Positions 49-63,760 of a DNA stretch of 64,000 nt are shown here, in pieces (the first letter of the stretch is position 1; each line of letters begins with the position of its first letter). Position numbers and translations under genes: made by a program. Below the pieces are notes generated by a model, which had not been told where the DNA came from, did no database searches, and worked only from the letters and a program-made list of their open reading frames with translations. Source of the stretch: Anaeramoeba ignava BMAN (Eukaryota > Protista > Anaeramoebae). The stretch lies in assembly GCA_028826165.1 (NCBI GenBank), contig JAPDFW010000072.1:186001-250000 (forward strand). Reading direction: 5' to 3'.

Positions 49-1005
49 CTAAAGAACATTTTCTTTTGGATTAAAATTCCATCCTTTTTTAATTAATTCT
101 GATAATTCTTTTGGGAAATTATTTGGGAATTCGGGTCTATTTCCATTCATAACAGTCATAGTAACTTGAATAAAATTAAGATCATCAAATGGTTCTTTTT
201 TAGCAAAAATAGAATATAAAATCATTGCTAAACTATAAATATCACATGAAGTATCATATTCATTTCCTTCATTAAATAGTTCAGGAGCAGAATAACGAAA
301 TGAATTAGTAGTTTTAGTAACTTTCATTGTATGTTCTCTAACTCTTGAAACTCCAAAATCTGAAATTTTTGGTTTATTACCAGAAATCAAGATATTTTCA
401 GGTTTTAAATCTCGATGAATAATAGCATTAGAATGTAGAAATTTTATTCCTTCAATAATATCAAGTGAGAACTTTATTTGTTCATCAAATGTTAAATTGT
501 GCATTCTCTTTTTTAAATCACCTTCTCCAGCATAATCCATCACAATTCCAAGCATACTATCCATTTCAACTATTCCATAAATTCTCACAATAGATGGATG
601 ATCCAATTTCATTGCCAACTTGATTTCATTATGAAATTCTTTTTTTGCTTTTTCATTGTTTAAAATATTAAGTCTCTTAATAACAACATCTTTTGATTTC
701 CATTTTGCTTTGAATATTTGGCATGTTTCTCCATTAGAAAATGGTTCGGGTTCAATTTGTAATTCTTTTAACGGAATTGCTGGAATAATTTCTTGGTTTG
801 TTTGGTTTTTCAGTTTTTCCACTAATGATAATAATGCTCTGTTTGGAATTGGTCGAAAATCATCAAAAGAAGATCGGCAAAAAATACAACTGTTACTCTT
901 TTTTAAACATGATTCACATATTGTATGTCCTTCTTGGCAAATGATCATCGGTTTTTTTAATTTTGAATAATTTTCAAAGCATTGTGGACAAATTTCTGGT
1001 TCCAT
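49..1005 (-). CDS. RING finger + TKL-type protein kinase; true C-terminus probably continues past a 1-nt frameshift near 60
   Basis: ATG at 1005 (MEPEICPQC). RING pattern CPQC..CQEGHTICESC..CIFCR. Kinase motifs VVIK, HRDLKPEN, DFG, APE, DIYSLAM. The shifted frame after PKE reads CSLDQFIECLKKI (subdomain XI), followed by a possible GTAAAT donor at ~10. Confidence 0.88.
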   Translation of the reverse strand: MEPEICPQCFENYSKLKKPMIICQEGHTICESCLKKSNSCIFCRSSFDDFRPIPNRALLSLVEKLKNQTNQEIIPAIPLKELQIEPEPFSNGETCQIFKAKWKSKDVVIKRLNILNNEKAKKEFHNEIKLAMKLDHPSIVRIYGIVEMDSMLGIVMDYAGEGDLKKRMHNLTFDEQIKFSLDIIEGIKFLHSNAIIHRDLKPENILISGNKPKISDFGVSRVREHTMKVTKTTNSFRYSAPELFNEGNEYDTSCDIYSLAMILYSIFAKKEPFDDLNFIQVTMTVMNGNRPEFPNNFPKELSELIKKGWNFNPKENVL

Positions 1006-1099
1006 TTGTAAAAAAAACAAAACAAAACAAAACAAAAATGAATTAAATGAGATAAAAAAAATGAAAAATGAAAAATGAAATTTAATTTTCCTTTTTTTC

Positions 1100-1549: not shown

Positions 1550-3331
1550 TTAATTATTAAATTTGTTAATTAATAAATCAAATAAATTTGGATTTGTTTG
1601 ATTTAATTGAAAATAATCAATTCCAATTTGAATTTCATCAATTATTTCTTTTGTAATTTGAATTTCATCTTTAATTTGATTTGAATAAATCCAATATTCT
1701 AATATTTGAAATGATTTATTACTTAATTCACTATAATCTGTAACTTTATTAGATTTATCCTCAGTTACAGATAAAAACATTCCTCGATATAATTCACTTC
1801 TCATTATTAATATTAATTTAGGAAATTTATATTGTTTTTCATTTCTTTCAATAATAAAATCTTTTTCATTTTCATTTTCATTTAAATAAATTCTTTTCAT
1901 TGTTTCTTCAATTTTTTCATTTGAATTTATAATTTCTTTAATTTCAAAATATAATTTTGGATTTATTATTCTGTTTGAATAAATCATTTCAAATATTTGA
2001 TTTGATTCTTTAATTGATTTTTTTGAAATAATTTCTTGAAATTTTTCATTTTGATTTTGATTTTGATTTAATCTATATTTCAATATTAATTTATGAGCTT
2101 TGATTATTTCTCCATTTTTGGTTTTAAATGAAATATTACAAAATTCTTTTCTTCTAAATAATTTTATCAAATCTTCTTCAAGATTGGAAAAAGAAGGAGG
2201 AGAATAATAAAGAAATGATTTATTATTTCCACAATAAACATGATAATTTGAAATATCTTCATTAAATCTTAATTTAGGAAGTTCAATTTGAATTGGAATT
2301 CGTTGAGTATTTGTATCTCCAGTTCCTAATTGACCTAAGGAATTATATCCAAATACAATTAGTTTCCCTTTTGTTGTTAAAATCAAAGTATGAGCATTTC
2401 CAACAGAAAAATCAATAATATTATCATCATTTTCAAATAAAGATGATTTGATTTCAGTAAATTCATAAGTATTTTCATCTTTGCCAAGTCCATTAAATGA
2501 AGAATATCCACATGAATAAAGTTTTCTTTTTGGATTTTGATTTTCATTTTCATTTTCAATCAACATTATTGAAAAAGAAACACCAGATTTAATATCAATT
2601 ATTTTACCTTTTGGAATATTTTGGATTTTGGTTAATTTTTGGATTTTTGTTTCTTTTTTTGATTCTCCTAATCCAATTTGAGCATAATTATTATCACCGC
2701 ATCCAAATAATTCTTGATTTGAATTTAAAAGAAAAACAGAATTAGAACAATTTCCTGAAAATATTTTAGAAACATTTTTCATCATTAAAATTGGTTTTTC
2801 TGTTTTTTTAAGTGTTTCAGAATCAAAACCAAGTTGGCCAAAAGTATTTAAACCAATTCCATAAGCATTTTGATTTGAAGTTAATAAGTAAAATGAAACA
2901 GATCCAGAAACAATATCTTGAATTATTCTATCATTTGTATCTTCAATTAATGATGAAATATTGATAAATTCATTTGGATTTTTTAGATTAATATCTTTTC
3001 CTTTGGCAAATACATTTCCTTCTATTGTTAAAATAGCTTCGTTATGATAACCAAAAGATACTTTTTGAATATTTTCTTCAATTTGGATTTTTGAAGGATT
3101 TTGTTTTGAATCATCTTCTCTTAAATATTCTATTGCTTTTCCATTTTTAAAAAGGAAAATTGTTGAAAAATCACTTGTTGAAATTTGTTTAATTTGTTTT
3201 TCATTTTCATTTTCATTTTCATTTTCATTTTCATTTTCAAATTTAAATTGAATTGGTTTTTTTATTATATTTGGCTCATTTTTTATTAATTTTGGTGATT
3301 GATTTGAACCGAAAAATATAATTTCATTCAT
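1550..3331 (-). CDS. RCC1-repeat beta-propeller + BTB/POZ protein, copy 1 (intronless)
   Basis: RCC1 motifs (GLNTFGQLG, CGDNNYAQIGLG, VGNAHTLIL, GYNSLGQLGTG). BTB motifs (FCNISF..IKAHKLIL; DFII..KFPKLILIMRSELYRGMF). Confidence 0.93.
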   Translation of the reverse strand: MNEIIFFGSNQSPKLIKNEPNIIKKPIQFKFENENENENENENEKQIKQISTSDFSTIFLFKNGKAIEYLREDDSKQNPSKIQIEENIQKVSFGYHNEAILTIEGNVFAKGKDINLKNPNEFINISSLIEDTNDRIIQDIVSGSVSFYLLTSNQNAYGIGLNTFGQLGFDSETLKKTEKPILMMKNVSKIFSGNCSNSVFLLNSNQELFGCGDNNYAQIGLGESKKETKIQKLTKIQNIPKGKIIDIKSGVSFSIMLIENENENQNPKRKLYSCGYSSFNGLGKDENTYEFTEIKSSLFENDDNIIDFSVGNAHTLILTTKGKLIVFGYNSLGQLGTGDTNTQRIPIQIELPKLRFNEDISNYHVYCGNNKSFLYYSPPSFSNLEEDLIKLFRRKEFCNISFKTKNGEIIKAHKLILKYRLNQNQNQNEKFQEIISKKSIKESNQIFEMIYSNRIINPKLYFEIKEIINSNEKIEETMKRIYLNENENEKDFIIERNEKQYKFPKLILIMRSELYRGMFLSVTEDKSNKVTDYSELSNKSFQILEYWIYSNQIKDEIQITKEIIDEIQIGIDYFQLNQTNPNLFDLLINKFNN

Positions 3332-3461
3332 TTTTGAAAAGAAAAAAATGAAAAAAATGATTTTGGAATTTTTAATTTTAATTTTAATTTTGATTTTAAT
3401 TTTGATTTTAATTTTAATTTTAATTTAAATTTTAATTTTAATTTTAATTTTAATTTTAATT

Positions 3462-5243
3462 TTAATTATTAAATTTGTTAATTAATAAATCAAATAAATT
3501 TGGATTTGTTTGATTTAATTGAAAATAATCAATTCCAATTTGAATTTCATTAATTATTTCTTGTGTAATTTGAATTTCATCTTTAATTTGATTTGAATAA
3601 ATCCAATATTCAAATATTTGAAATGATTTATTACTTAATTCACTATAATCTGTAACTTTATTTGATTTATCTTCAGTTACAGATAAAAACATTCCTCGAT
3701 ATAATTCACTTCTCATTATTAATATTAATTTTGGAAATTTATATTGTTTTTCTTTTCTTTCAATAATAAAATCTTTTTCATTTTCATTTTCATTTAAATA
3801 AATTCTTTTCATTGTTTCTTCAATTTTTTCATTTGAATTTATAATTTCTTTAATTTCAGAATATAATTTTGGATTTATATTGGAATTATTTGAATAAATC
3901 ATTTCAAATATTTGATTTGATTCTTTAATTGATTTTTTTGAAATAATTTCTTGAAGTTTTTCAATTTGATTTTGATTTTGATTTTGATTTAATCTATATT
4001 TCAATATTAATTTATGAGCTTCAATTATTTCTCCATTTTCTGTTTTAAATGAAATATCACAAAATTCTTTTCTTCTAAATAGTTTTATCAAATCTTCTTC
4101 AAGATTGGAAAAAGAAGGAGGAGAATAATAAAGAAATGATTTATTATCTCCACAAGAAACATGATAATTAGAAATATTTTCATTAAATATTAATTTAGGA
4201 AGTTCAATTTGAATTGGAATTAATTGAGTATTTGTATCTCCAGTTCCTAATTGACCAAAAGAATTATTTCCAAATCCTATTAATTTTGAATTGGAAGTGA
4301 AAATCAAAGTATGATAAAAACCAACAGAAAAATCAAGAATATTATCATTTTCAAATAAAGATGATTTGATTTCAATAAATTTTTCAGCATCGAGATAATC
4401 ATGGCCAATTCCATTTAATTCATAATTTCCACATGAATAAAGTTTTCTTTTTGGATTTTGATTTTGATTTTGATTTTGATTTTCATCTTCAATCAACATT
4501 ATTGAATGAAAATTCCCACATTTAATATCAATTATTTTGCCTTTTGGAATATTTGGGATTTTGGTTAATTTTTGGATTACTTCATTAGCTTTCAATCCAA
4601 GTTGACCAAATGGATTAAATCCGCATCCAAATAATTCTTGATTTGAATTTAAAAGAAAAACATGATTTGAAGTATTTCCTGAAAATATTTTAGAAACATT
4701 TTTCATCATTAAAATTGGTTTTTCTGTTTTTGGAAATGTTTCAGGATCAAAACCAAGTTGGCTTAATTCATTTGAACCAATTCCATAAACATTTTGATTT
4801 GAAGTTAATAAGTAAAATGAAACAGATCCAGAAACAATATCTTGAATTATTCTATCATTTGTATCTTCAATTAATGATGAAATATTGATAAATTCATTTG
4901 GATTTTTTGGATTAATATATTTTCCTTTGGCAAATACATTTCCTTCTTTTGTTAAAATAGCTTCATTTTGATAACCAACAGTTACTTTTTGAATATTTTC
5001 TTCAATTTGGATTTTTGAAGGATTTTGATTTGAATCATTTTCTTTTAAATATTCTATTGCTTTTCCATTTTCAAAAAGGAAAATTGTTGAAAAATCACTT
5101 GTTGAAATTTGTTTAATTTGTTTTTCATTTTCATTTTCATTTTCATTTTCAAATTTAAATTGAATTGGTTTTTTTATTATATTTGGTTTATTTTTGATAA
5201 GTTTTGGATATTCATTTGAACCAAAAAATATAATTTCATTCAT
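3462..5243 (-). CDS. RCC1-BTB protein, copy 2
   Basis: 593-aa ORF colinear with copy 1, same motifs. Confidence 0.93.
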   Translation of the reverse strand: MNEIIFFGSNEYPKLIKNKPNIIKKPIQFKFENENENENEKQIKQISTSDFSTIFLFENGKAIEYLKENDSNQNPSKIQIEENIQKVTVGYQNEAILTKEGNVFAKGKYINPKNPNEFINISSLIEDTNDRIIQDIVSGSVSFYLLTSNQNVYGIGSNELSQLGFDPETFPKTEKPILMMKNVSKIFSGNTSNHVFLLNSNQELFGCGFNPFGQLGLKANEVIQKLTKIPNIPKGKIIDIKCGNFHSIMLIEDENQNQNQNQNPKRKLYSCGNYELNGIGHDYLDAEKFIEIKSSLFENDNILDFSVGFYHTLIFTSNSKLIGFGNNSFGQLGTGDTNTQLIPIQIELPKLIFNENISNYHVSCGDNKSFLYYSPPSFSNLEEDLIKLFRRKEFCDISFKTENGEIIEAHKLILKYRLNQNQNQNQIEKLQEIISKKSIKESNQIFEMIYSNNSNINPKLYSEIKEIINSNEKIEETMKRIYLNENENEKDFIIERKEKQYKFPKLILIMRSELYRGMFLSVTEDKSNKVTDYSELSNKSFQIFEYWIYSNQIKDEIQITQEIINEIQIGIDYFQLNQTNPNLFDLLINKFNN

Positions 5244-5471
5244 TTTTGAAAAGAAAAAAAATGAAAAAATGATTTTTGGAATTTTTAATTTTAATTTTAA
5301 TTTTGATTTTTAGTTTTGATTTTAATTTTAATTTTAATTTTAATTTTAATTTTAATTTTGATTTTAATTTTAATTTTAATTTTAATTTTAATTTTAATTT
5401 TGATTTTAATTTTAATTTTAATTTAAATTTTAATTTTAATTTTAATTTTAATTTTAATTTTAATTTTAAAT

Positions 5472-7250
5472 TTAATTTTGATTTTGAATATTAAATTTTT
5501 TAATTAATAAATCAAATAAATTTGGATTTGTTTGATTTAATTGAAAATAATCAATTCCAATTTCTAATTCATCAATTATTTCTTGTGTAATTTGAATTTC
5601 ATCTTTAATTTGATTTGAATAAATCCAATATTCAAATATTTGAAATGATTTATTACTTAATTCACTATAATCTGTAACTTTATTTGATTTATCTTCAGTT
5701 ACAGATAAAAACATTCCTCGATATAATTCACTTCTCATTATTAATATTAATTTTGGAAATTTATATTGTTTTTCTTTTCTTTCAATAATAAAATCTTTTT
5801 CATTTTCATTTTCATTTAAATAAATTCTTTTCATTGTTTCTTCAATTTTTTCATTTGAATTTATAATTTCTTTAATTTCAGAATATAATTTTGGATTTAT
5901 TATTCTGTTTGAATAAATCATTTCAAATATTTGATTTGATTCTTTAATTGATTTTTTTGAAATAATTTCTTGAAGTTTTTCAATTTGATTTTGATTTTGA
6001 TTTAATCTATATTTCAATATTAATTTATGAGCTTCAATTATTTCTCCATTTTCGGTTTTAAATGAAATATTACAAAATTCTTTTCTTTCAAATAATTTTA
6101 TCAAATCTTCTTCAAGATTGGAAAAAGAAGAAGGAGAATAATAAAGAAATGAATTATTATATCCACAAAGAACATGATAATTAGAAATATTTTCATTAAA
6201 TCTTAATTTAGGAAGTTCAATTTGAATTGGAATTAATTGGTTATTTGTATCTCCAGTTCCTAATTGTCCATATTCATTATATCCAAATCCTATTAATTTT
6301 GAATTTGAAGTTAAAATCAAAGTATGAGAATATCCAACAGAAAAATCAAGAATATAATCATTTTCTTCAAATAAAGATGATTTTATTTCAGTAAATTCAT
6401 AAGTATTTTCATATTTTCCAAGTCCATTATAAAGATGATTTCCACATGAATAAAGTTTTCTTTTTGGATTTTGATTTTCATTTTCATTTTCAATCAACAT
6501 TATTGAAAAAGTAGCACCTGATTGAATATCAATTATTTTACCTTTTGGAATATTTTGGATTTTGGTTAATTTTTGAATATATGCTTGTTTTCTTGATTCT
6601 CCTAACCCAAGTTGATCTAATTCATTATCACCACATCCAAATAATTCTTGATTTGAATTTAAAAGAAAAACAGATTTTTTATTAATTCCTGAAAATATTT
6701 TAGAAACATTTTTCATCATTAAAATTGGTTTTCTTGTTTTTGGAAATGTTTCAGAATCAAAACCAAGTTGACTAGAATAATTAGAACCAATTCCATAAGC
6801 ATTTTGATTTGAAGTTAATAAGTAAAGTGAAACAGATCCAGAAACAATATCTTGAATTATTCTATCATTTGTATCTTCAATTAATGATGAAATATTGATA
6901 AATTTTTTTGGATTAATATCTTTTCCTTTGGCAAATACATTTCCTTCTATTGTTAAAATAGCTTCATTTTGATAACCAACAGTTACTTTTTGAATATTTT
7001 CTTTAATTTGGATTTTTGAAGGATTTTGATTTGAATCATTTTCTTTTAAATATTCTATTGCTTTTCCATTTTCAAAAAGGAAAATTGTTGAAAAATAACT
7101 TGTTGAAATTTTTTTAATTTGTTTTTCATTTTCATTTTCATTTTCATTTTCATTTTCAAATTTAAATTGAATTGGTTTTGTTATTTTATTTGGTTCATTT
7201 TTGATAAGTTTTGGATATTCATTTGAACCAAAAAATATAATTTCATTCAT
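5472..7250 (-). CDS. RCC1-BTB protein, copy 3
   Basis: 592-aa ORF colinear with copies 1 and 2. Confidence 0.93.
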   Translation of the reverse strand: MNEIIFFGSNEYPKLIKNEPNKITKPIQFKFENENENENENEKQIKKISTSYFSTIFLFENGKAIEYLKENDSNQNPSKIQIKENIQKVTVGYQNEAILTIEGNVFAKGKDINPKKFINISSLIEDTNDRIIQDIVSGSVSLYLLTSNQNAYGIGSNYSSQLGFDSETFPKTRKPILMMKNVSKIFSGINKKSVFLLNSNQELFGCGDNELDQLGLGESRKQAYIQKLTKIQNIPKGKIIDIQSGATFSIMLIENENENQNPKRKLYSCGNHLYNGLGKYENTYEFTEIKSSLFEENDYILDFSVGYSHTLILTSNSKLIGFGYNEYGQLGTGDTNNQLIPIQIELPKLRFNENISNYHVLCGYNNSFLYYSPSSFSNLEEDLIKLFERKEFCNISFKTENGEIIEAHKLILKYRLNQNQNQIEKLQEIISKKSIKESNQIFEMIYSNRIINPKLYSEIKEIINSNEKIEETMKRIYLNENENEKDFIIERKEKQYKFPKLILIMRSELYRGMFLSVTEDKSNKVTDYSELSNKSFQIFEYWIYSNQIKDEIQITQEIIDELEIGIDYFQLNQTNPNLFDLLIKKFNIQNQN

Positions 7251-7604
7251 TTTTGAAAAGAAAAAAATGAAAAAATAATTTTTGGAATTTTTAATTTTAA
7301 TTTTAGTTTTGATTTTAATTTTAATTTTAATTTTAATTTTAATTTTAATTTTAATTTTGATTTTAATTTTAATTTTGATTTTAATTTTAATTTTTAATTT
7401 TAATTTTAATTTTAATTTTAATTTTAATTTTAATTTTAATTTTAATTTTAATTTTAATTTTAATTTTAATTTTAATTTTAATTTTGATTTTAATTTTAAA
7501 TTTAAATTTAATTTTAATTTTAATTTTGATTTTAATTTTAATTTTAATTATTAATTTTAATTTTAATTTGAATTTTAAATTTAATTTTAATTTTAATTTT
7601 GATT

Positions 7605-9400
7605 TTAATTATTAAATTTATTAAATAATAAATCAAATAAATTTGGATTTGTTTGATTTAATTGAAAATAATCAATTCCTGTTTCTAATTCATCAATTAT
7701 TTCTTTTGTAATTTCAATTTCATCTTTAATTTGATTTGAATAAATCCAATATTCAAATATTTGAAATGATTTATTACTTAATTCACTATAATCTGTAACT
7801 TTATTAGAAGTATCATTTGTTACAGATAAAAACATTCCTCGATATAATTCACTTCTCATTATTAATATTAATTTAGGAAATTTATATTGTTTTTCTTTTC
7901 TTTCAATAATAAAATCTTTTTCTTTTTCTTTTTCATTTTCATTTAAATAAATTCTTTTCATTGTTTCTTCAATTTTTTCATTTGAATTTATAATTTCTTT
8001 AATTTCAGAATATAATTTTGGATTTATTATTCTGTTTGAATAAATCATTTCAAATATTTGATTTGATTCTTTAATTGATTTATTTGAAATAATTTCTTGA
8101 AGTTTTTCAATTTGATTTTGATTTTGATTTTGATTTAATCTATATTTCAATATTAATTTATGAGCTTCAATTATTTCTCCATTTTTGGTTTTAAATGAAA
8201 TATCACAAAATTCTTTTCTTCTAAATAGTTTTATCAAATCTTCTTCAAGATTGGAAAAAGAAGGAGAATAATAAAGAAATGATTTATTATTTCCACAAGA
8301 AACATGATAATTAGAAATATTTTCATTAAATCTTAATTTAGGAAGTTCAATTTGAATTGGAATTAATTGAATATTTGTATCTCCAGTTCCTAATTGACCA
8401 TCAGGAATTATATCCAAATCCTATTAATTTTGAATTGGATGTTAAAATCAAAGTATGAGCATTTCCAACAGAAAAATCAATAATATTATCATCATTTTCA
8501 AATAAAGATGATTTGATTTCAGTAAATTCATAAGTATTTTCATCTTTGCCAAGTCCATTAAATGAAGAATATCCACATGAATAAAGTTTTCTTTTTGGAT
8601 TTGGATTTTGATTTTGATTTTGATTTTCATTCAACATTATTGAAAAAGAAAGACTAGATTTAATATCAATTATTTTGCCTTTTGGAATATTTTGGATTTT
8701 GGTTAATTTTTGGATTTTTGTTTCTTTTATTGATTTTCCTAATCCAATTTGACCAGATTGATTATTTCCGCATCCAAATAATTCTTGATTTGAATTTAAA
8801 AGAAAAACAGAATTAGAACAATTTCCTGAAAATATTTTAGAAACATTTTTCATCATTAAAATTGGTTTTTCTGTTTTTTTAAGTGTTTCAGAATCGAAAC
8901 CAAGTTGACCATGTTTATTTGAACCAATTCCATAAACATTTTGATTTGAAGTTAATAAGTAAAATGAAACAGATCCAGAAACAATATCTTGAATTATTCT
9001 ATCATTTGTATCTTCAATTAATGATGAAATATTGATAAATTCTTTTTGATTATTTGGATTAATATCTTTTCCTTTGGCAAATACATTTCCTTCTATTGTT
9101 AAAATAGCTTCATTTTCCCAACCAACAGTTACTTTTTGAATATTTTCTTCAATTTGGATTTTTTCAGGATTTTGATTTGAATCATTTTCTTTTAAATATT
9201 CTATTGCTTTTCCATTTTCAAAAAGGAAAATTGTTGAAAAATCACTTGTTGAAATTTGTTTAATTTGTTTTTCATTTTCATTTTGATTTTCATTTTCATT
9301 TTCATTTTCAAATTTAAATTGAATTGGTTTTTATTTTATTTGGTTTATTTTTGATAAATTGTGGATATTGATTTAAACCAAAAAATATAATTTCATTCAT
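7605..9400 (-). CDS. RCC1-BTB protein, copy 4, with two frameshifts (~9330 in an A-run, ~8401); sequencing error or young pseudogene
   Basis: ATG at 9400 with the same leader as the other copies. Full-length colinear homology split across ORFs 8401..8856 and 7605..8417. Confidence 0.85.
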
Positions 9401-9450: not shown

Positions 9451-12223
9451 TTAATTATCATCCAAAGAAAAAGATTGAAAATTAAAAGAAAATTGTTTTG
9501 AAATTTTTTCTTTAACAATTTTCAACTTTCGAGGAAAACCTGAAAGAGGATTTAATTGGAAATATTCATGAGCATCCTCAAGATCTAAAATTGATTTGAT
9601 TGAAATATTTTGATCAATTTCATCGAAATATAAAAACTTGATAAATTGTTGAATTGCTTCAAGACATTTTTCACTATAATCTTGAACTTTATTTGAAGAA
9701 TCATTTGTGGATAAGAACATTCCTCTAAAAATTTGAGTTCTGGAAGCCAAAATGAGTTGATGAGCTTTTACTTCAACATTTTTCACAATAATTGAGAAAT
9801 CTTTGCTTTTTTCATCTTCAAATAATCTTTTTATATCTGAAAGAAATCCTTTTTTTCCGTTTTTCGATTCAAATGATTTAATTTCAAAATCTTTCACTAA
9901 TTTTTCAATTTTTTCTTTTTGGTTTTCATTATCAATAAAAACAGAACCTGAATAAATCCATTTCAGAAAACAAATCACATCTGTTTTCGGAAGTAAAGCA
10001 AATTTGGAAACCAAAAAACTTGGTTCTTTTTGCGTTCTGCATTTTAATATTAAAGAATGAGCTTGAATTTCCTCTTTTTCTTTTGTTCGAATTGTGATGT
10101 CACAAAATTCATTTGATTCAAAAAAATTGAGAAAATCATCTTGAAAAGTTTTTTCACTTTGGATTAATTTCAAAATTTCTTCATTCATTTCTAAATCTGT
10201 TATTCTTTTTCCCTAAAAAAAAAAGTGGAATAAATTGGAAAATATATAATTTTGAATGAAAATTACATTCTAAATAAGAAAAATAAATAAAAACAAGAAA
10301 AAAAATATTTTAAAAAGGAATAAATTTACTTTCTTTTGATTTTTTTTTAAAAGATTTTTCAAATCAAATTAAATCAAATCAAATTAAATTATTTTTGCTT
10401 TTTTTTGTTAATAATAAAATTTACATCTAAATCATCCATTTCAAATTTTTCATTATTTATTGCATATTCAACTTCTTCAAAAGTAGCTTTATGTAAAATT
10501 AAGAAGAATAACAAAGAACGATCCTAATCAAAGGTATAAAAAAAGAGAAAATAAATTCCAAAAAATTTGTTCCACTTTTTTTTTTTTTTTGATAATTCAA
10601 TATTGAAATATTTAAATCTACAAACAGCTAAAAAATTTTGAGCACTTGAATAATTCTGATCTGCAGATTTTTTCATCCATTTATAAGATTCAATGAGATT
10701 TTTTTTGACACCTTCACCTTTCAAGTAAGAGTAAGCAATTCCATATTGACCTTCTGGTAAATCATCTTCTGCTGCTTCAAGATAAAATTGAGCAGCTTTT
10801 TTTTTATCCATTGGTGTTCCACGACCATAGAAATAGGAATTAGCCAAATTATATTTGGAAAGAGTGTAATTTTTTTCAGCAGCTTCTTTAAATAATTCGA
10901 AAGCTTTTTGATCATCTTTTTCAACACCATTTCCGTGATAATAACAAATTCCAAGATTATTAATACTGACAGTCTCTCCTAGATCAATTGCCTGGAGATA
11001 CAACTCCCTTGCGCGCTGATAATCACGAGTTACTCCTCTCCCGTGATAATAACAATTTCCAAGATTATTTAATGCTTTTGAACATCCAAACTCAATTGCT
11101 TTTTTATAAAATGTGATTGCTTTGTCATAACTTTGTTCACATTGGGTTCCATTATAATAATATAATCCAATTCCATTCATTCCTCTTGCATCACCAAATT
11201 TTTCTGCTTTTTGGAAATATTCAAATGCTTTTCCGTGATCTTCTTTGATATGATGTTCTGAAATTCCTAATCCTGTGTATATTTTCCCGTTTGTTGTATC
11301 TTTTTTTAATGCTTCTTTAAAGTATTCATATGATTTTTTATAATCCGTTTTTGTTCCTATTCCATCTGCATAGCAATATCCTAATTCAATTAATGCATTT
11401 AAATCTTTTTCTTCTTCTGTTAATTTTTTAAATATTTCAAATGCTATTTTTTGTTTTTGGTTATTTGAGTTTTTAGAGTAATCTACTGCGATTTTGAATA
11501 AAGATTCTTTATCATTTTCCATTAAAATTTGACTTAGATCTAAAATTTCAATTTGATTTTCATTTTGAATTTGATTTTGATTTTCATTTTGATTTTCATT
11601 TTCATTTTGAATTTGAATTTGATTTTCAATTTGATTTTGATTTTGAATTTGATTTTCATTTTGAATTTGAATTTGATTTTCAATTTGATTTTCAATTTGA
11701 TTTTCAATTTGATTTTGAATTTGATTTTCAATTTGATTTTGATTTTGATTTTGATTTTGATTTTGATTTTGATTTTGATTTTGATTTTGATTTTGATTTT
11801 GATTTTCAATTTGATTTTCAATTTGATTTTGATTTTGATTTTGATTTTGATTTTGATTTTGAATTTCATTTTCATTTTGGTTTAAATTTTCATTTTCAAT
11901 TTGATTTTCATTTTCATTTTGAATTTGATTTTGAATTTGATTTTCAATTTGATTTTCAATTTGATTTTCAATTTGATTTTCAATTTCAATTTCATTTTCC
12001 ATTTCATTTTCAATTTTGTTCAAAATTTGATTTAAATCCAAAATTTCATTTTCAATTTGATTTGAAATTTTATTTTGAATTTCATTTTCATTTTCATTTT
12101 GGTTTAAATTTGCATTTTCATTTTGGTTTAAATTTGCATTTTGGTTTAAATTTTCATTTTCATTTTGATTTGCATTTTCAATTAAATTTGATTTTCATTT
12201 TGGTTTAAATTTGATTGATTCAT
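9451..12223 (-). CDS. Spliced gene: N/Q/E low-complexity region + SEL1/TPR repeats + ankyrin-like linker + tandem BTB domains. Exons ~12223-10626, 10523-10425, 10332-10330, 10269-10267, 10212-9451
   Basis: SEL1 repeats (ALNNLGNCYYHGRGVTRDYQRA) and BTB motifs (FCDITI..IQAHSLIL; KDFSIIV..VKAHQLILASRTQIFRGMF). Phase-0 GT-AG introns join the two ORFs in frame. The upstream ATG at 12223 needs one homopolymer frameshift. Confidence 0.75.
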
Positions 12224-50624: not shown

Positions 50625-50937
50625 TTTTGATTATTAAATTTGTTAATTATTTAATCAAATAAATTTGGATTTGTTTGATTTAATTGAAAATAATCAATTC
50701 CAACTTGAATTTCATCAATAATTTCTTGTGTAATTTCAATTTCATTTTTAATTTGATTTGAATAAATCCAATATTCTAATATTTGAAATGATTTATTACT
50801 TAATTCACTATAATCTGTAACTTTATTAGAAGTATCATTTGTTACAGATAAAAACATTCCTCGATATAATTCACTTCTCATTATTAATATTAATTTTGGA
50901 AATTTATATTGTTTTTCTTTTCTTTCAATAATAAAAT
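50625..50937 (-). pseudogene. Truncated 3' fragment of an RCC1-BTB gene
   Basis: IIERKEKQYKFPKLILIMRSELYRGMF..QTNPNLFD, nearly identical to the paralogs. Homology stops abruptly at ~50937. Confidence 0.88.
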
Positions 50938-51898
50938 ATTTTAATTAATTTATTTCAAAAATGGAATAAAGAATATTAAATAATTAAATTTAAAATTAAT
51001 TATATTTTATATATTTTATTAATATTTCTTTATTTATTTTAATTTAATAAAATAAATAAAATATTTTAATTAATTTAATAAAATTGAGAAGAAAATTGAA
51101 ATATTTTAATAAAGATAAATATTTAATTTTAATATTAATTAATAATAATTTAATTTAAATTTATTTTATTTTAATTTGATTTAATATTTTTATTTATTAT
51201 ATTAATATTTTTGATTATTTATTGTTCCAATTTTAATTATAATAAAATATATTAAAAAGTGGAATAAATGTTTTAATAAAGATATATATTTAATTTTAAT
51301 AATTTTTAATAATAATTTAATTTAAATTTATTTTATTTTTAATCTTAAATAATATTTTTATTTATTAAATTAATATTTTTGATTATTTATTATTCCAATT
51401 TTAATTATAATAAAATATATTAAAAAATAAAATTAAAAAATTAAAAATTTTAAATAAATTGAATTTAAACATGATTGAATAAGATAAACTTTCTAAAAAA
51501 AATAATTTACTAATTATTCTATTTTTGATTTTGATTATAATTTATTAATATTTAAATATTAATTAATAATAAATTTTATTTGATTTTTTTTATTTTATTA
51601 TTTTAATTAATGAATTTAAATTTAATTATTATTAATTTCTATTTTCAATTTTTTATTTTTATTTATTATATTAAAAATATTCAATTTTTAAAATTTATTA
51701 TTTTTTTTTTGGATTATTTTTATTAATTAAATTTTTAATAAATATTTTAAATTAAAATTAAATTATTTAAAATTAAATTTGTTTCTTATTTATTGTTTTA
51801 AAGAAATTAATTTGATTAAAAGTAAATTAAAATTGAATTAAATTTTGAAAAAAAAAATTAAAAAAAAAAAGTTTGATTTTCTTATTATTAATTAATTT

Positions 51899-53527
51899 TT
51901 AAATGAAATAAGTTTCAAGTTCATCAACAACCCATTTATTATAAGAACCAGCCAAATAACTTTTAGCTTCATTTGTATCATAAGTAATTCCATTAGGTAG
52001 ATTGTAATTATAACCAATATTTGAATAACCTGCTTTTAAATCAGAATATAAATAAAAATCACCATTACCAAATACTGGACCATGATCTAATCGAGAATAA
52101 ATTGCATATTGAGGTTGTTTAATTGTAAACTTTGCAGGTATTCTATCCCCTTTATCATTTCTTAATGAAAAAATAAATGCATTTAAATCATTAATGTCTC
52201 CTGGATTTCCATATTTAAATCCAACTTGAGTAAAACCTCCAAAAATAAAATTTTGATTTGTTTTGATAATAACTAATGTTTTTCCTTTCCCATCAACTGC
52301 TTTATGCCAATTTTGAGAATTAAATCCATCTCTTTTTGCTGAAAATCCTTTTTTCATTTTAGAAAAAAAATCATTATCATTTATCCATTTTTGTAATTTC
52401 TTAACATATTCAATATCTTTAATAATTTCTGAAAATTGAAGAAAATTCTTTCTCAATTCAATTCTCTTTTGATATTTAGTGAATAATTTATCAAAAATTG
52501 GTTTCATTTTTTCATTTTTTTTGTTTTTTCTTTTTGGAATTTCTTGATTATCTTTTTGATTCTTTTTCAATTTCTCTTCAATTTCTTTTCAATTTCTCTT
52601 CAATTTGTTTCCATTTCTGATTCAATTCTTCTTTTTCTCTTCAATTTCCTTCTCTTTGTTTTCAATTTCTTTTTGATTATCTTGAATAACTTTGTTTTGA
52701 ATATCAACTAGAAAAGAATTTGGAAGAAAAAAATCAAATTGTTTTAATTTATCAAAATCTTGTTTTGAAATTGAATCTTTATCAAATAATGAAAAAAAAG
52801 AATGAAATAATCTTTTCTTTGCATTCATTTTGTGTTTATATTTCCTTAATTTTAATCTTTCATTTCTTTTTTTAATCCAATTATTTAAAAATTGAAAAAA
52901 ATCAAATTGAAAAATTTCTTTTTTTTCTTGTTTAAATTGAATAAATTTGATAATTTCTTCTTTAGTTAAATTGAATAAATTTTCATTATTCTTAATTTGG
53001 GAAAAATTTTGATTTATTAATTCAAAACATTTTATTTCAATTTCATTTGAATTTAAATTTCGATTTTGGAATAAAAATTGGAAAAAATTTGAATAATTAA
53101 TTGAATTTAAAATTTTTTTTTGAATAATTTCTTTCAATAAATTTAATTTAAAATAAATTGAAATTTCCAATAATTGAATAAGATTTTCTTGATTCTCAAA
53201 AGAAATATTTCCATAATAAATATAACTCAAAATTGATTCCATTTCTTTTTTATTAAATTGATTTAAAGAAATAGAAAGAGATTCTTGCCTTAATGATTCA
53301 TTAAAAAGGAGATCTTGAAGATAAAATTGATTTATGAACTTTAATTTCAAAAGGATTTGATTTATTCTCAACAAAAATTGAAAAATCTTTAAATGAATTT
53401 CCATTTAAAAAGGTTTGAATAATCTTTAATTAAATTTTTGTTACTTTTTTTCTAAATTTTTCATTTCATTTTGATTTTGTTTTTGATTTGCATTTTCAAT
53501 TTGGTTATTATTATTATTATTATCCAT
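51899..53527 (-). CDS. BTB-BACK-coiled coil-TLDc protein with several frameshifts (error or pseudogene)
   Basis: TLDc motifs FSAKRDGF..WHKAVDGKGKTLVIIK..FGGFT..AFIFSL..GPVFG..LAGSY. BTB/BACK segment ILSYIYYG..LLEISIYFKL. ATG at 53527. Confidence 0.8.
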
Positions 53528-54479: not shown

Positions 54480-56261
54480 TTAATTTTGATTATTAAATTT
54501 GTTAATTAATAAATCAAATAAATTTGGATTTGTTTCATTTAATTGAAAATAATCAATTCCAACTTGAATTTCATCAATGATTTCTTGTGTAATTTGAATT
54601 TCATCTTTAATTTGATTTGAATAAATCCAATATTCAAATATTTGAAATGATTTATTACTTAATTCACTATAATCTGTAACTTTATTTGAAGTATCATTTG
54701 TTACAGATAAAAACATTCCTCGATATAATTCACTTCTCATTATTAATATTAATTTAGGAAATTTATATTGTTTTTCTTTTCTTTCAATTATAAAATCTTT
54801 TTCATTTTCATTTTCATTTTCATTTAAATAAATTCTTTTCATTGTTTCTTCAATTTTTTCATTGGAATTTATAATTTCTTTAATTTCAGAATATAATTTT
54901 GGATTTGTTATTCTGTTTGAATAAATCATTTCAAATATTTGATTTGATTCTTGAATTGATTTATTTGAAATAATTTCTTGAAGTTTTTCATTTTCATTTT
55001 GATTTTGATTTAATCTATATTTCAATATTAATTTATGAGCTTTGATTATTTCTCCATTTTTGGTTTTAAATGAAATATCACAAAATTCTTTTCTTCTAAA
55101 TAATTTTATTAAATCTTCTTCAAGATTGGAAAAAGAAGGAGGAGAATAATAAAGAAATGATCTATTATTTCCACAAGAAACATGATAATTGGAAATATTT
55201 TCATTAAATCTTAATTTAGGAAGTTCAATTTGAATTGGAATTGATTGATCTTTTGTATCTCCATTTCCTAATTGACCCCAATAATTATCTCCAAATCCAA
55301 TCAATTTTGGTTTGGAAGTTAAAATCAAATTATAATTATATCCAACAGAAAAATCAAGAATATTATCATCATTTTCAAATAAAGATGATTTGATTTCAGT
55401 AAATTCTCTTGTATTTCCCTTTTTTTCAAGTCCATTTAATCCATAAGAACCACATGAATAAAGTTTTCTTTTTGGATTTTCATTTTCATTTTCATTTTCA
55501 ATCAACATTATTGAATGAAAATTTCCACATTGAATATCAATTATTTCACCTTTTGGAATATTTTGTATTTGGGTTAATTTTTGGGTTGTTGATTCTTTTC
55601 TTGATTCTCCTAATCCAAGTTGACCATATCTATTATGTCCGCATACAAATAATTTTTGATTTGAATTTAAAAGAAAAACATGATTTGAAACATTTCCTGA
55701 AAACATTTTAGAAACATTTTTCATCATTAAAATTGGTTTTTCTGATTTTATAACTGTTTTAGAATCAAAACCAAGTTGACCAAATTGATTTGAACCAATT
55801 CCATAAGTATTTTGATTTGAAGTTAATAAGTAAATTGATTGAGATCCAGAAACAATATCTTCAATTATTCTATCATTTGTATCTTCAATTAATGATGAAA
55901 TATTGATAAATTCATTTATATCAATTTTATTAATATTAAATCCTTTGGCAAATACATTTCCTTCTATTGTTAAAATAGCTTCATTTTCAAAACCAACAGT
56001 TACTTTTTGAATATTTTCAATTTGGATTTCTAAAGGATTTGGCTTTGGATTTCTGTTTAGATATTCTATTGCTTTTCCATTTTTAAAAAGGAAAATTGTT
56101 GAAAAAAAACTTGATGAAATTTGTTTAATTTGTTTTTCATTTTCATTTTCATTTTCATTTTCATTTTCAAATTTAAATTGAATTGGTTTTGTTATTGTTT
56201 CTGGTTTATTTTTGAAAAGTTTTGGTTGTTTATTTCTTCCAAAAAATATAATTTCATTCAT
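54480..56261 (-). CDS. RCC1-BTB protein, copy 5
   Basis: 593-aa ORF colinear with copies 1-4. Confidence 0.93.
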   Translation of the reverse strand: MNEIIFFGRNKQPKLFKNKPETITKPIQFKFENENENENENEKQIKQISSSFFSTIFLFKNGKAIEYLNRNPKPNPLEIQIENIQKVTVGFENEAILTIEGNVFAKGFNINKIDINEFINISSLIEDTNDRIIEDIVSGSQSIYLLTSNQNTYGIGSNQFGQLGFDSKTVIKSEKPILMMKNVSKMFSGNVSNHVFLLNSNQKLFVCGHNRYGQLGLGESRKESTTQKLTQIQNIPKGEIIDIQCGNFHSIMLIENENENENPKRKLYSCGSYGLNGLEKKGNTREFTEIKSSLFENDDNILDFSVGYNYNLILTSKPKLIGFGDNYWGQLGNGDTKDQSIPIQIELPKLRFNENISNYHVSCGNNRSFLYYSPPSFSNLEEDLIKLFRRKEFCDISFKTKNGEIIKAHKLILKYRLNQNQNENEKLQEIISNKSIQESNQIFEMIYSNRITNPKLYSEIKEIINSNEKIEETMKRIYLNENENENEKDFIIERKEKQYKFPKLILIMRSELYRGMFLSVTNDTSNKVTDYSELSNKSFQIFEYWIYSNQIKDEIQITQEIIDEIQVGIDYFQLNETNPNLFDLLINKFNNQN

Positions 56262-56568: not shown

Positions 56569-58318
56569 TTAAAATAAATTGCACTTCTCATCTTTTTTTG
56601 ATTTTGTTTTTTGGCCATGTTGAATTACTAAATCCAATAAATTTGGATTTGTTTCATTTAATTGAAAATAATCCATTCCAATTTTAATTTCATCAATAAT
56701 TTCTTGTGTAATTTGAATTCCTTCTTTAATTTGATTTGAATAAATCCAATATTCTAATATCTCGAATGATTTATTACTTAATTCACTATAATCTGTAACT
56801 TTATTAGATTTATCTTCAGTCACAGATAAAAACATTCCTCGATATAATCCACTTCTCATTATTAATATTAGTTTGTGAAATTTATATTGTTTTTCTTTTC
56901 TTTCAATAATAAAATCTTTTTCATTTTCATTTAAATAAATTCTTTTCATTGTTTCATTTATTGATTCTTCATTTATAATTTCTTTAATTTCAGAATATAG
57001 TTTTGGATTTATTTTGGAATTGTTTGAATAAATCATTTCAAATATTTGATTTGATTCTTTTGTTGATGTTTTTGAAACAATTTCTTGAAGTTTTTCAATT
57101 TGGTTTTGATAATCTTTTAATCTATATTTCAATATTAATTTATGAGCTTCAATTATTTCTCCATTTTCGGTTTTAAATGAAATATCACAAAATTCTTTTC
57201 TTTGGAATAATTGAAGCAAATCAAAGGCGAGTCTTGGAAAAAATGAGCAATATAAAAAAGAGTTGAAAGGACCACAATAAACATGATAATAGGAAATATT
57301 AAAAGATAAATGGGGAAGTTGAAGTTGGGTTGGTTTTGCTAGATCTTGATCAAATATATCTGTTAGTTCACCATTGTCGTTACTTCCAAATCCAATTAGT
57401 TTTCCATTTTCTGTCAAAATTAAAGTATGAGAACTTCCAACAGAAAAATCAAGAATATTATCATTTCGGAATAATTTTGATTTGAGTTCAGTAAACAAGG
57501 GAGTATTTGGAGCAATTCTAATTCCGTTAGTGAGCCAATAACCTGATGAATAGAGTTTTCTCTTTCCGTTTTCGTCTTCGATCAACATTATTGAATGTAA
57601 GTTACCACATTGAATATCAATTATTTTTCCTTTTGGAATATTTTGGATTTTGGACATTTTCTCAACTTGGCCTGATTGATCTAATCTGAATTTGCCTAAT
57701 CCAAGTTGACCATTTATGTGATCTCCACATGCAAATAACTCTTGATTTGAATTTAAAGCAATTAATGCTTTTGCTGAATTTCCTGAAAATATTTTGGAAA
57801 CATTTTTCATCATTAAAATTGGTTTTTCAGTGAATCTTGGCGCATCAGAAGTAAGTTGTCCAACATCATTTGAACCAATTCCATAAGCATTGTGATTTGA
57901 AGTTAATAAGTAAATTGCATCTCTTCCAGAAACAAGATCTTCAATTACTCTATCATTTGGATCTTCAATTAATGATGAAATATTGATAAATTCATTTGGA
58001 TTTTTATCATTGATATGTTTTCCTTTCCCAAATGCAGTTCCTTCCTTTGTTAGAATAGCTTCAATTTCCCAACCACAAGATATTTTATTGATGTTTTTTA
58101 TTTGAATTTTTTGAGGTTTTTCATCTTTTAAATATTCTATTGCTTTTCCGTTTTCAAAAAGGAAAAATATTTGTTTCTGCAGTAGAAATGATTTGTTTAA
58201 TTTGTGTTTTTTTTTGGGGAATATTAATTAGAACCGGAAGTCTAATTTCAAAAGAAGAATCTTTACAGAAAACCATTCTTCTATTTTCACCAAAAAAGAA
58301 AATTTCTTGTGAGAACAT
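56569..58318 (-). CDS. Divergent RCC1-BTB protein, copy 6, with a C-terminal CaaX box; frameshift at ~58160
   Basis: ATG at 58318 (MFSQEIFFFG). RCC1 and BTB motifs present. Ends KTKSKKDEKCNLF-stop. Confidence 0.87.
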
Positions 58319-58421: not shown

Positions 58422-61400
58422 TTAGTCTTTTTTCTGGTAAAGAATTCTGTTCTGAATTGGAACTTTGGATGAAAATAAATTCATTTGTGATTTTCCATCA
58501 GAAATGATAAAACCTTTCAAACCCAAAGAATTAAGGATTCTTGATTTTAATTTAGGAACAGAAGTGGCAATTCTTTGGAGAGTTTTTATACCAATTGCAT
58601 CAACCATAACGGAAATTTTATCTGAATCAATTTTGGACAGTTCAACGGATTTTTCAAGCATAAGATCATCCATTTTTTTATTGTGTTCGTAATCAAGATT
58701 ATAAAAGGCTTCTTGTCTTTTTCTTTTTGAAGTCTCGATAATTGAGAAGGCATCAGCATTGCTCTGTGACTGTTGCACTTGGATTTTACCGTTGATGTTT
58801 GTAGTCTCTGCATTAGCGAGCGCAACAGCCTTTGCTATTCCAGTTTTTGATATAGCGGCTGAAAGTGACTTGAGCTCGAGAAGTTGTTTTCTTTTTTCCT
58901 CGGACATAACATCGTTTTGGATCATGAGCTGGTTGATTTTTCCGTTGGCTTCAGCCTCTCTGCGCTTGGCATCCTGCTTGGCTTCAGCCTCTTGGGATTC
59001 GGTTGTGATTTTGATTGCGAGCTGAACGGATTTCTGAAGTAATCTCAAAGTGTCCTGATCTACCGGCTCCACGGATTGCACATCGATGTTTGTGATGATG
59101 AGGTTGTTTGAGGGGAAGCGGAAGTAATCATTCACGTGGTTGTCCTTGTCGAGACCAAACACTGCGATCCGGATGGCTCTAGCGCATTCCTTGTGGAAAT
59201 TATCAAAGCTCATTCCGGCGACAATTGCGCGGATCTTAGACGCCATTGTCTTGCAGGCATCGCCAACAAAGTCCGGTATCTGGAAGATGCGGTTGGAATC
59301 TTTAGGGTTGCGTTTGTCGATGTCGAAGTACCAGTTGTAGGCAAGTTGTAGGGAGAGCCTGGCATGATCGCTTGTCTCAACGATGAACTTGTCCGTCATA
59401 AAATCAGGTCCTAATAAAAGGGAAATGGATGTGATCACGCGCGGCTTTTTAGGAAGTCCGCCCGAAAGAGACATGAGTGTGAACTCCTCATCTGGGCCAA
59501 GCATTGCTAGATCAGGTCCGAATTGGATGCGGTTTTTTTTCTTCTTGTAGTCGTAGATCTGCACAACCGCGTTGTCCGGTATTCTGTATGTTAGAACGCG
59601 CGTTGGATCGCGGACAAATGCGTCTTGTTGTGAAAGCATTGCTTGGTTCTCTTTGTTCCCGCGAGTCGAAACAGGATCCTTGTTGATCAACTTTTCGACA
59701 ATTTCGGGAATTTTTTTTTCCCAAAGTTCCTCATTTGGTTTCAGCATGTAAGTTTCTCCAACGATTGCCGACACACGACCAGTGAAGAGGTCGCGAACAT
59801 ATATTCCCTCATTAATATGCAACGGGATCCGCGATCTCATCTCGATCACTTCCGCTTGGATTGGGGGTATATATTTGCCAGGACCATAAATCATCCAACG
59901 AGTTCCTGGATCATGAGTTTTTTTGATTTTCTTATTTTTCTCCGCAACCATTTCCTCAAAGTATTCCTTGCATCGCAGAAGTAGCGCCTGGTCGTCGTTG
60001 AGGATATAAACATCGCGGATACCGCCATCAAGTCTCTCACCAGGATTAAGAAAAAACTCAACAGGACCACTACGAAGTTGGGATTTTCCGAGCTGAGGTT
60101 TTCCATGTTCATCAACAGGATCAAGCACAATGCAGTACTGCAAGCTTGTGAGCTCATTCAGCGCGACTTGGCCTACCACGTCTTCGTCGACATCAGGCAA
60201 ATGTGTGGGGGATATTGTGCTGTCAACCAGCCATTCATCACCGGCCCTTCTTATAACCTTATACGCGTCCTCAAATGTTTTCTTCGCTCGCAAATGCACT
60301 GCCGTTGTTCTTGTTAGAACAATTGCCTCCACCATCTTCACTACTTCCTCGTCAACCCCAGGGATGTATTCGCCGGCTTCTCGCACTAACCACTCCTCTC
60401 CTGTTTTGTGCTTTCTTCCATAGCAATCTATGCATTCCCCTCGCGCCCGCAATTGCAGTGCGTTGTCTTGTTTGATTATTTGTGGGTGGATCATCTCTTT
60501 TATACTCACTTCTGTTCGTGGGTAATAGAATCCTGGTCCTTCGAAATACCATTGATCCCCTACTTTTCTTCGTGTTTTCTTCCCTTTTTTCTCTTCTTTT
60601 ATTTCTTCAAAATCTGAGATTGCTTCTAATCGGAATATTTGTCCTTTTTTCAATAATTTTAGTGGTTCGGGCTTTTATATTTTAATTAAATTTAAAATTC
60701 ATTTTGAAATTAAAATTCATTTTGAAATTAAAATTCATTTTGAAATTAAAATTCATTTTGAAATTAAAATTCATTTTGAAATTAAAATTCATTTTGAAAT
60801 TAAAATTCATTTTGAAATTAAAATTCATTTTGAAATTAAAATTCATTTTGAAATTAAAATTCATTTTGAAATTAAAATTCATTTTGAAATTAAAATTCAT
60901 TTTGAAATTAAAATTCATTTTGAAATTAAAATTCATTTTGAAATTAAAATTCATTTTGAAATTAAAATTCATTTTGAAATTAAAATTAAAATTCAAATTA
61001 AAATTAAAAATCATTTTGAAATTAAAATTAAAATTAAATTTAATATTAAAATTCAAATTAAAATTCAAATTAAAATTCATTTTGAAATTAAAATTAAAAT
61101 TGAAATTAAAATTAAATTTAATATTAAAATTAAAATTAAAATTCAAATTCAAATCAAAATTAAAATTAAAATCAAAATTAAAATTAAAATTAAAATTAAA
61201 ATCAAAATTAAAATTAAAATCAATTTAAATTCAAAATTAAAACCAAATTGAGAATTTTTTTGTTTTAAATAAAATAAAATAAAACTTACAACACCATCAA
61301 TTTCTTCACCAGGATATAAAGGAAAAGGAAGAGGTTTATGAAAACGGATTTCTTCTTTTCCATGTTTAATTTTTGCCTTTTTTTTTAAAATTAATTAAAT

Positions 61401-62696: not shown

Positions 62697-63760
62697 TTAA
62701 TTTGAATTTTTGAGTTCTTTTTTAACTAAATTTAATTTTTGTTTAAATAAAGAATATTCTGAAAATTGAAAAAATTCTTCAGCTTCTTCAAGTTCTTCAT
62801 AAATATTCATTTCTAATCCTTTTTCAATTTCATCATAATATAAAAATTTAATTATTGTTTCAAGTGCTTTTGTTGATTTTCCTGTATAATCTTTAACTTC
62901 ATTTGTTGAATCTTCAGTAACTGTTAAAAACATTCCTCGAAATAATTCACTTCTTGCTGCTAATATAAATTTATGTGCTTTGATCTTTTTTCCTTCATTT
63001 GATATAATTGAAAAATCTTTACTTTCTTCATTTGAATAAAGTGAAATTAAATCTGAAATAATTCTTTCTTTTGGTGTTGTTTTATTTTTATTTTGATTTT
63101 GATTTTGATTTTGATTTTTCATTTTCATTTTCATTTTCATTTTGATTTTTATTTTGATTTTGATTTTCATTTTGATTTTGATTTTGATTTTGATTTTGAT
63201 TTTGATTTTGATTTTCAATTTCATTTTGATTTTTATCAAATTCTGTTTTAATTCCTGAATAAATATCTTCTAATAATTTCATTCCTTCTTCTTTATTATG
63301 ATTAATTAGATATTCTTCTATTTTTTCATTTGTTCATTTCCAATTCTTTGTTCTATAAATAATGAATGAATTCCAATTTCTTGTGAATCATTTGTTTTAT
63401 ATATTTTATCACATAATTCTTGTTTTTTTAAAAAATTAATTAAATCAAAAATAACTCCATAAATTGAAAATTTATATAAATTTGATGCTTCTTTTCCAAA
63501 TTTTCTTTCTATTCCTGTTATTAAAATTTCTGTATTTTTGTTTTGTTTAAATTTGATAAATTAAATTAAATTAAATTAAATAAATTGATAAATAAAATAA
63601 AATAAATACCATTCCATAATTTATTTGAATCATATTCTTCAAGAAGATTTACATAATGAATTTGAATTTTCCTTTCTTGATTTTGATTTAAAGAAATAAA
63701 TCTTTTTTCAATATATTCTTTAATTTCATTTGGTTCATTTTTTCCTTTTTTTCCTTTTTG
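62697..63760 (-). CDS. 3' part of a gene encoding a G-protein alpha-like C-terminus fused to tandem BTB domains; 5' end lies beyond the window
   Basis: EIKEYIEKRFISLNQNQERKIQIHYVNLLE resembles the Galpha alpha4-beta6-alpha5 region. A short intron follows, then ELCD..IGIHSFI and KDFSIIS..IKAHKFILAARSELFRGMF (BTB). Frameshifts present. Confidence 0.65.

Follow-up and report, generated by a model that had tools for sequence, protein, structure and literature searches.

The window analysed here is a 64,000-nucleotide (nt) stretch of the genome of the unicellular metamonad Anaeramoeba ignava BMAN (contig JAPDFW010000072.1, positions 186,001 to 250,000). Between positions 1550 and 9400, head-to-tail on the minus strand, it carries three intact, intronless RCC1-BTB-BTB genes encoding 592–593 aa and one doubly frameshifted copy. 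We refer to these genes as c1 (1550..3331, 593 aa), c2 (3462..5243, 593 aa), c3 (5472..7250, 592 aa; P0004 in the public annotation) and c4 (7605..9400), the last of which is broken at codon 26 (-2 nt, near 9328) and again at codon 333 (+1 nt, near 8402). An earlier note on this DNA had placed five copies in the array, but only four lie there; the fifth, c5 (54480..56261, minus strand, 593 aa), is intact and sits outside it. In c1, residues 1–376 (2204..3331) form a seven-bladed RCC1-like propeller and residues 376–593 (1553..2206) a tandem-BTB tail under purifying selection, and a Pfam scan returned RCC1 repeats above the cut-off together with two BTB stretches. Pairwise identity between window copies is 92–96% in the tail, 76–83% in the propeller and 11–37% at a set of hypervariable propeller sites. 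The tail, which the earlier note had called nearly invariant, is thus far more conserved than the propeller but not invariant, while the loop variants listed in that note were found at their positions when the translations and the DNA alignment were inspected by eye.

Across 152 proteins of this family, 39 propeller sites and no tail sites exceed an entropy of 2 bits. AlphaFold predicted a confident seven-bladed propeller that Foldseek matched to RCC1, RPGR and HERC2 (E ~1e-23), and together with the Pfam result these models describe an RCC1-like domain (RLD) of seven four-stranded blades with RCC1 repeats. A hypervariable set of 38 sites was then defined on a held-out protein set; the hypervariable codons of c1 (within 2204..3331, minus strand) are 9, 11, 12, 21, 22; 54; 95, 96, 112; 144, 145, 163, 164, 175; 195, 197, 213, 215, 216, 228, 229, 231; 251, 252, 276–279, 285; 312, 313, 329, 331, 332, 342, 344; and 369, 370. 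When the 38 sites were assigned using the strands of the AlphaFold model, 13 fell in A-B loops, 23 in C-D loops and 2 in strands, and none in the opposite B-C or D-A loops. Hypervariable sites therefore make up 36 of 131 A-B/C-D loop positions versus 0 of 67 B-C/D-A positions (Fisher p = 8e-8). In a four-stranded blade, loops A-B and C-D lie on the same side. Assigned in this way, by blade topology rather than from model coordinates, the hypervariable residues are predicted to occupy one propeller face across all seven blades instead of being scattered, as the earlier note had anticipated. They align to the G-W-R-H and G-W-x-K-Y-G tryptophan loops of UVR8, which have a functional role in that protein.

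The make-up of these sites is biased towards Tyr, Trp, Asp, Arg and His. Tyr accounts for 20% of residues (5.7-fold enriched), Trp is enriched 7.8-fold and His 2.2-fold, and Ile is depleted 7-fold; the loops had been described as rich in Y, F, W, H and N, which fits Tyr, Trp and His but not Phe (just 1.3-fold) or Asn (not enriched). Each loop exists in 55–114 distinct versions among 135–151 copies, and 83% of copy pairs share none of 12 loops. Among 30 copies, 28 sites carry at least seven amino acids, versus 0–1 in neutral simulations with free recombination. We infer that each copy very probably binds different protein surfaces through its variable face.

Selection on the loops was evaluated at the DNA level using 68 copies (the window plus 30 loci), 30 of which had been chosen for their likeness to c1. 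The ratio of non-synonymous to synonymous polymorphism, pN/pS, was 2.35 at the held-out sites and 2.1–2.3 at sites chosen from the repeat motif, compared with 0.76 in the framework and 0.46 in the tail. Codon models written for this analysis returned an omega of 4.6 under M2a (likelihood-ratio test statistic, LRT, 550) and 3.45 under M8. Per-segment trees gave an omega of 3.5 (LRT 224), with every segment up to residue 420 significant and the two segments beyond it not (no signal in residues 421–585). Two results count against this evidence: simulated free recombination without selection produced LRT values of 81–206 and an omega of 2.6–3.1, and a tree-free sampling model fitted unstably when theta was taken from flanking codons (omega <1, with an implausible theta of 6–10). 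Since the selection-free recombining simulations reached such LRT values, tree-based site tests are inflated by recombination, and single-tree site models were not relied on alone. With theta from the tail or framework, the tree-free model gave an omega of 9–14, and omega stays near 5 even against the local synonymous rate, a hand estimate from codon-position diversities. Diversifying selection at the loops survives the recombination controls; dN/dS above 1 at these sites, a check set beforehand, was borne out by the pN/pS counts, the codon models and the tree-free model. Positive selection in the propeller and purifying selection in the tail together form the pattern of fast-evolving adaptor families.

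These data bear on whether the loops vary merely through lack of constraint after selfish or neutral amplification. Broken genes make up about a quarter of the unselected copies, and satellite spacers between genes favour unequal crossing-over, as such an origin would have it. It is nevertheless largely refuted, and we consider it very improbable, because loop diversity is several-fold above synonymous diversity, the opposite-face loops are constrained, and Ile, in spite of AT pressure, shows a 7-fold depletion alongside the enrichment of Trp.

A dedicated loop-directed mutator, acting by targeted hypermutation or templated micro-conversion and leaving selection only to filter its products, would find support in the synonymous diversity, which is raised 2–5 fold at and within one or two codons of hypervariable sites (four-fold sites near loops 0.20–0.24 vs 0.04–0.10; two-fold sites 0.045–0.07 vs 0.012). 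Third positions are far from randomised, however: at hypervariable codons their four-fold diversity is 0.20, where equilibrium would be 0.55, and 14 of 25 sites show none at all, whereas first and second positions, at 0.54 and 0.49 of ~0.68, are near saturation. The synonymous rise also fades within the same short distance as linkage does, which is the behaviour expected of hitch-hiking, and in the most similar duplicate pairs, with 8 and 16 differences, the changes are scattered and hardly favour the loops. Hitch-hiking explains the raised local synonymous diversity, and a mutator is unlikely. Frameshift positions likewise show no loop bias, and clustering of frameshifts at loops was rejected.

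Many variable codons look like N-N-T and reverse transcriptases are present in the genome, features that recall a diversity-generating retroelement with adenine-directed mutagenesis. Variable codons nonetheless retain A at the third position (43 of 43 at codon 22), columns with a T majority are as variable as those with an A majority (0.29 vs 0.33), the variable sites extend over 1.1 kb, and the 20 window open reading frames (ORFs) scanned contained no reverse transcriptase domain. Adenine specificity being absent, adenine-directed mutagenesis was ruled out, and we give such an element next to no probability. Several long intact reverse-transcriptase ORFs (1,100–1,900 aa) lie on other contigs (G000 C42, C64, C67, C25, C45 and C115).

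The diversified loops are shuffled between copies. The family tree resembles a star and is weakly supported, and linkage between framework sites, strong at 1–2 nt, falls to the shuffle level of r2 beyond 5–20 nt; this loss alone does not prove recombination, because hot sites on a star tree can produce the same picture. Eleven multi-nucleotide markers, at which recurrence is unlikely, were compared pairwise, and 46 of 55 pairs contained all four gametes, including pairs only 18–35 nt apart. An identical 166-nt tract spanning seven hypervariable codons is shared by c1 and c4 (chance 6e-6), and mosaic copies are visible on contig C24. Frequent short gene conversion therefore homogenises the frame and recombines loop alleles. 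One scaffold has been amplified in short tandem arrays, the loops of one propeller face diversify under selection, in our preferred reading by point mutation, and short conversion tracts reshuffle the loop alleles between copies while the framework is kept homogeneous.

The array is a small part of a far larger family. In the assembly (42,843,398 bases, 147 contigs), a 26-nt motif of the tail was matched 1,246 times, against 0 for the control, and a motif at the start 605 times. Of the copies sampled, the two motifs recover 47 of 48 and 22 of 43, respectively, which puts the calibrated family size at ~1,270 copies by the tail motif and ~1,180 by the start motif. The relatives fall into 710 protein clusters and the family occupies ~2.2 Mb, equivalent to ~5% of the genome and ~8% of the annotated gene number (14,837 genes are given for strain BMAN in Table S1; PMC11550330). 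Amino-acid identity among copies is 83–85%. The copies are spread over many contigs in short tandem arrays, and adjacent ones are scarcely more alike than copies on different contigs (median divergence 8.5% and 9.2%). Ten of 38 copies not picked for similarity were broken within the portion covered, some possibly through assembly errors, so perhaps about a quarter of all copies are; birth-and-death turnover would account for them, and such clustered genes with birth and death are a mark of fast-evolving adaptor families. Neither c1 nor c2 has an exact counterpart in the public protein collection, where many models are fused or truncated, and the annotation therefore undercounts or mis-models the family. 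The spacers of the array are 130–350 bases of AT-only satellite. That between c1 and c2 (3332..3461) consists of an AT-only hexamer satellite and a conserved pyrimidine-rich leader just 5' of the start codon, and those between c2 and c3 (5244..5471) and between c3 and c4 (7251..7604) have the same make-up. This leader is rich in T and closes with a few A residues that abut the start codon (window 3332–3380); it recurs upstream of nearly all fetched copies and is possibly a shared promoter or 5' untranslated element.

All close homologs are A. ignava proteins, and the nearest full-length relatives are Anaeramoeba proteins. Older paralogs in A. ignava share 33–43% identity and an A. flamelloides relative ~26%; used as a query, the latter matched mostly bacterial RCC1 repeats. 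The main text of the genome paper (PMC11550330) does not mention BTB, RCC1, cullin or ubiquitin, and in the accessible part of its supplement RCC1/BTB-type family names appear only in the lateral-transfer table, where Supplementary Data 5C includes the PANTHER families BTK-binding protein-related, RCC1 and Claret among the candidates (16–35 genes each, A. flamelloides). The propeller may be of bacterial origin. We found no paper describing the family in the literature covered, which leaves out subscription journals.

The tail was modelled separately with a deeper alignment. The model contains two BTB domains in one chain (predicted local distance difference test score, pLDDT, 92), giving the RCBTB-type order of an RLD followed by two BTB domains. 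Its best predicted structural matches are a BTBD7-named cluster together with ankyrin-BTB/ABTB1-like proteins, LZTR1 and RhoBTB3 (template-modelling score, TM, 0.68–0.78 for the last three). Among solved structures, the closest in sequence is the BTB chain of SPOP in its complex with Cul3 (E = 3e-13); the tail thus has the BTB fold of Cul3 adaptors. SPOP contacts Cul3 through a loop containing M233-x-E235 (PMC3597819). At the equivalent position of BTB2, in an alignment that needs a one-residue gap, 98 of 141 copies carry V-T-E (c1 residues 522–524, within 1553..2206, minus strand), and V522 and D525 of this loop are nearly invariant. F130-S131-E132 is the KLHL11 counterpart of this hydrophobic-x-Glu alpha3-beta4 loop. 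Human RCBTB1 shares this domain order and has been reported to act as a CUL3 adaptor (PMC4974088). Judged from the model and these alignments, the constant tandem BTB probably docks on Cul3, with bound targets being ubiquitinated.

Several observations weigh against docking on Cul3. BTB domains also occur in many proteins that do not serve cullins as adaptors, and the best solved structural matches of the tail are fused BCL6/Miz1 BTB dimers. BTB1 is without a Cul3-contact loop, and 35 of 141 copies have V-T-N in BTB2, with Asn in place of Glu. Only a single helix lies between BTB2 and the stop codon, where we found no two-helix 3-box or BACK extension, and loss of the 3-box lowers SPOP-Cul3 affinity ~30-fold (PMC3597819); because of this single helix, we do not class the family with the canonical BTB/3-box adaptors. 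The ~8 cullin-domain loci in the genome are matched at the cullin-family level only. A rival reading is a diversified binder library that operates without a cullin: the tandem BTB would serve as a rigid stalk or as a hub for oligomerisation, and binding by itself would sequester the targets or set off a signal or autophagy. Arguments for it are the truncated 3-box and degenerate BTB1, the resemblance of the intrachain BTB pseudo-dimer to fused transcription-factor BTB dimers, and the occurrence of the same tail on armadillo (ARM), ankyrin and Rab-like proteins. The conserved Cul3-contact-like loop of BTB2, with V522 and D525 nearly invariant, and nearest predicted structures that are known or presumed Cul3 adaptors speak for the cullin instead, and a library without it is rather unlikely.

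The tail-sharing proteins of A. ignava comprise armadillo-like, ankyrin and Rab-like GTPase proteins (P0124, P0126, P0130, P0122, P0480, P0482, P0484 and P0490). Some armadillo-like proteins carry a whole RCC1-BTB unit; these may be gene-model fusions.

Combining these lines of evidence, we arrive at an inherited library of ~1,200 cytosolic binders, most likely substrate receptors of cullin-3 ligases directed against foreign proteins, an explanation to which, taken whole, we assign about an even chance. None of the close relatives listed has a transcriptome source, which counts against it. Putative docking of the tandem BTB on Cul3 would lead to ubiquitination of the captured foreign protein. 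The earlier note's reading of a constant adaptor with variable recognition is partly supported by the loop selection, the single face, the likeness of the tandem-BTB tail to SPOP and LZTR1 and the presence of cullins in the genome, and is weakened by the truncated 3-box. That note had overlooked how far the family extends through the genome, its shuffling by gene conversion, the presence of a second BTB domain and a subset of copies ending in a CaaX box. No signal peptide-like or membrane segment was found (maximum hydropathy 1.45), and a secreted or membrane receptor was rejected on this basis.

A CaaX box directs prenylation. A basic stretch followed by a C-terminal CaaX box is present in 12 of 115 full-length relatives (~10%), which suggests that these copies are membrane-anchored isoforms; more speculatively, they might keep watch on phagosome or symbiosome membranes from the cytosolic side. 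The lysine-rich stretch and CaaX box were seen in L022, L025, L006 and L029 and in the 12 of 115 proteins P0003–P0120, scattered through the family.

The targets are, somewhat more likely than not, foreign, such as proteins of intracellular bacteria, prey or viruses. A. ignava houses bacterial symbionts, and in the related A. pumila lives a member of the Legionellales that has a Dot/Icm system (bioRxiv 10.64898/2026.04.11.717937). The same ligase receptors could instead serve internal conflict or kin recognition, with selfish elements, inteins, allorecognition or toxin-antidote pairs, not microbes, as their targets. Anaeramoeba has many inteins (PMC10710043), and hybrid incompatibility in Caenorhabditis has been linked to expanded ligase adaptors (PMC12951971), but ~1,200 distinct surfaces would exceed the known internal selfish proteins and seem to fit an open-ended antigen set better; we give internal conflict a small probability. 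An antibody-like intracellular immunity, in which a thousand-gene propeller library feeds cullin-3, loops change by directed mutation or micro-conversion, and prenylated members at symbiosome or phagosome membranes help choose which bacteria are retained, is a bolder picture that we think improbable.

How free-living protists distinguish symbionts, prey and parasites is a largely open question, and here ~5% of the DNA and ~8% of the genes are devoted to one scaffold with a single face diversified like antibody loops. The closest functional parallels are the nematode and plant F-box and MATH-BTB families which, as described in PMC12951971, are also large, clustered cullin-adaptor families with birth and death, combine a conserved adaptor part with a fast-evolving recognition part, and have a proposed role in innate immunity. 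Unlike these, the A. ignava family is one young scaffold built on an RCC1 propeller in a unicellular metamonad, its variation is confined to ~38 loop residues at linkage equilibrium through gene conversion, and the Pfam scan found no F-box or MATH domain. If the library does feed Cul3, the idea of the adaptor as immune receptor, still mostly speculative in nematodes and plants, would reach a deep-branching unicellular lineage; it is unusually testable here because members differ at a defined ~38 residues. The family is also a natural propeller-binder library and a case of extreme concerted evolution with site-specific diversity.

Human RCBTB1/RCBTB2 and IBTK are single conserved genes with a BACK-type extension. 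They share with the A. ignava proteins an RCC1-like propeller and two BTB domains, and RCBTB1 and IBTK are reported CUL3 adaptors (PMC4974088, PMC4447969), but the A. ignava family is massive, hypervariable and without a full 3-box, and the likeness is one of domain order. The family works like the F-box/MATH-BTB families and has the domain order of RCBTB1, and by the tests run is a member of neither. LZTR1, ABTB1-like proteins and RhoBTB3, the nearest predicted folds of the tail, have Kelch, ankyrin or GTPase heads and are single-copy and undiversified, although LZTR1 is likewise a propeller plus tandem-BTB CUL3 adaptor. The seven-bladed fold of UVR8, HERC2 RLD2 and RPGR is the same, but these have fixed partners and conserved loops. 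Mammalian HERC5/HERC6, which have an antiviral role, similarly join an RLD to an E3 ligase, with positive selection and gene conversion between RLDs (PMC7775381); they differ in being two or three genes with a HECT ligase whose variation lies between species, not across a thousand paralogs. By functional analogy, antibodies and lamprey variable lymphocyte receptors (VLRs) also present Tyr/Trp-rich variable loops on a constant scaffold. Germline receptor sets mixed by gene conversion are known from plant S-locus F-box genes and from the zebrafish NLR family (PMC4852459). Compared with these systems, the A. ignava family has an unrelated fold, a cytosolic location and a single-celled host, and its diversity appears to be germline-encoded.

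Further members and relatives of the family lie elsewhere in the window. A divergent copy (56569..58215, minus strand; 79% DNA identity) has a probable frameshift near its 5' end, a C-terminal basic stretch and a CaaX-like box, and a lone fragment (50627..50942, minus strand) corresponds to the BTB2 end of a family copy. The stand-alone tandem-BTB gene directly upstream of c4 (9451..10188, minus strand), at ~30% identity to the family tail, is a distant relative outside the family. The window is dense in BTB genes, with BTB and TLDc pieces at 51899–53404 (minus strand) and a further BTB ORF at 62697–63239 (minus strand). Directly downstream of the array is a RING-finger and protein kinase ORF (49–1035, minus strand), and a Sel1-repeat protein ORF spans 10524–12041 (minus strand). 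A Major vault protein gene (58422–60653, minus strand), with local GC of up to 46%, adjoins the divergent copy.

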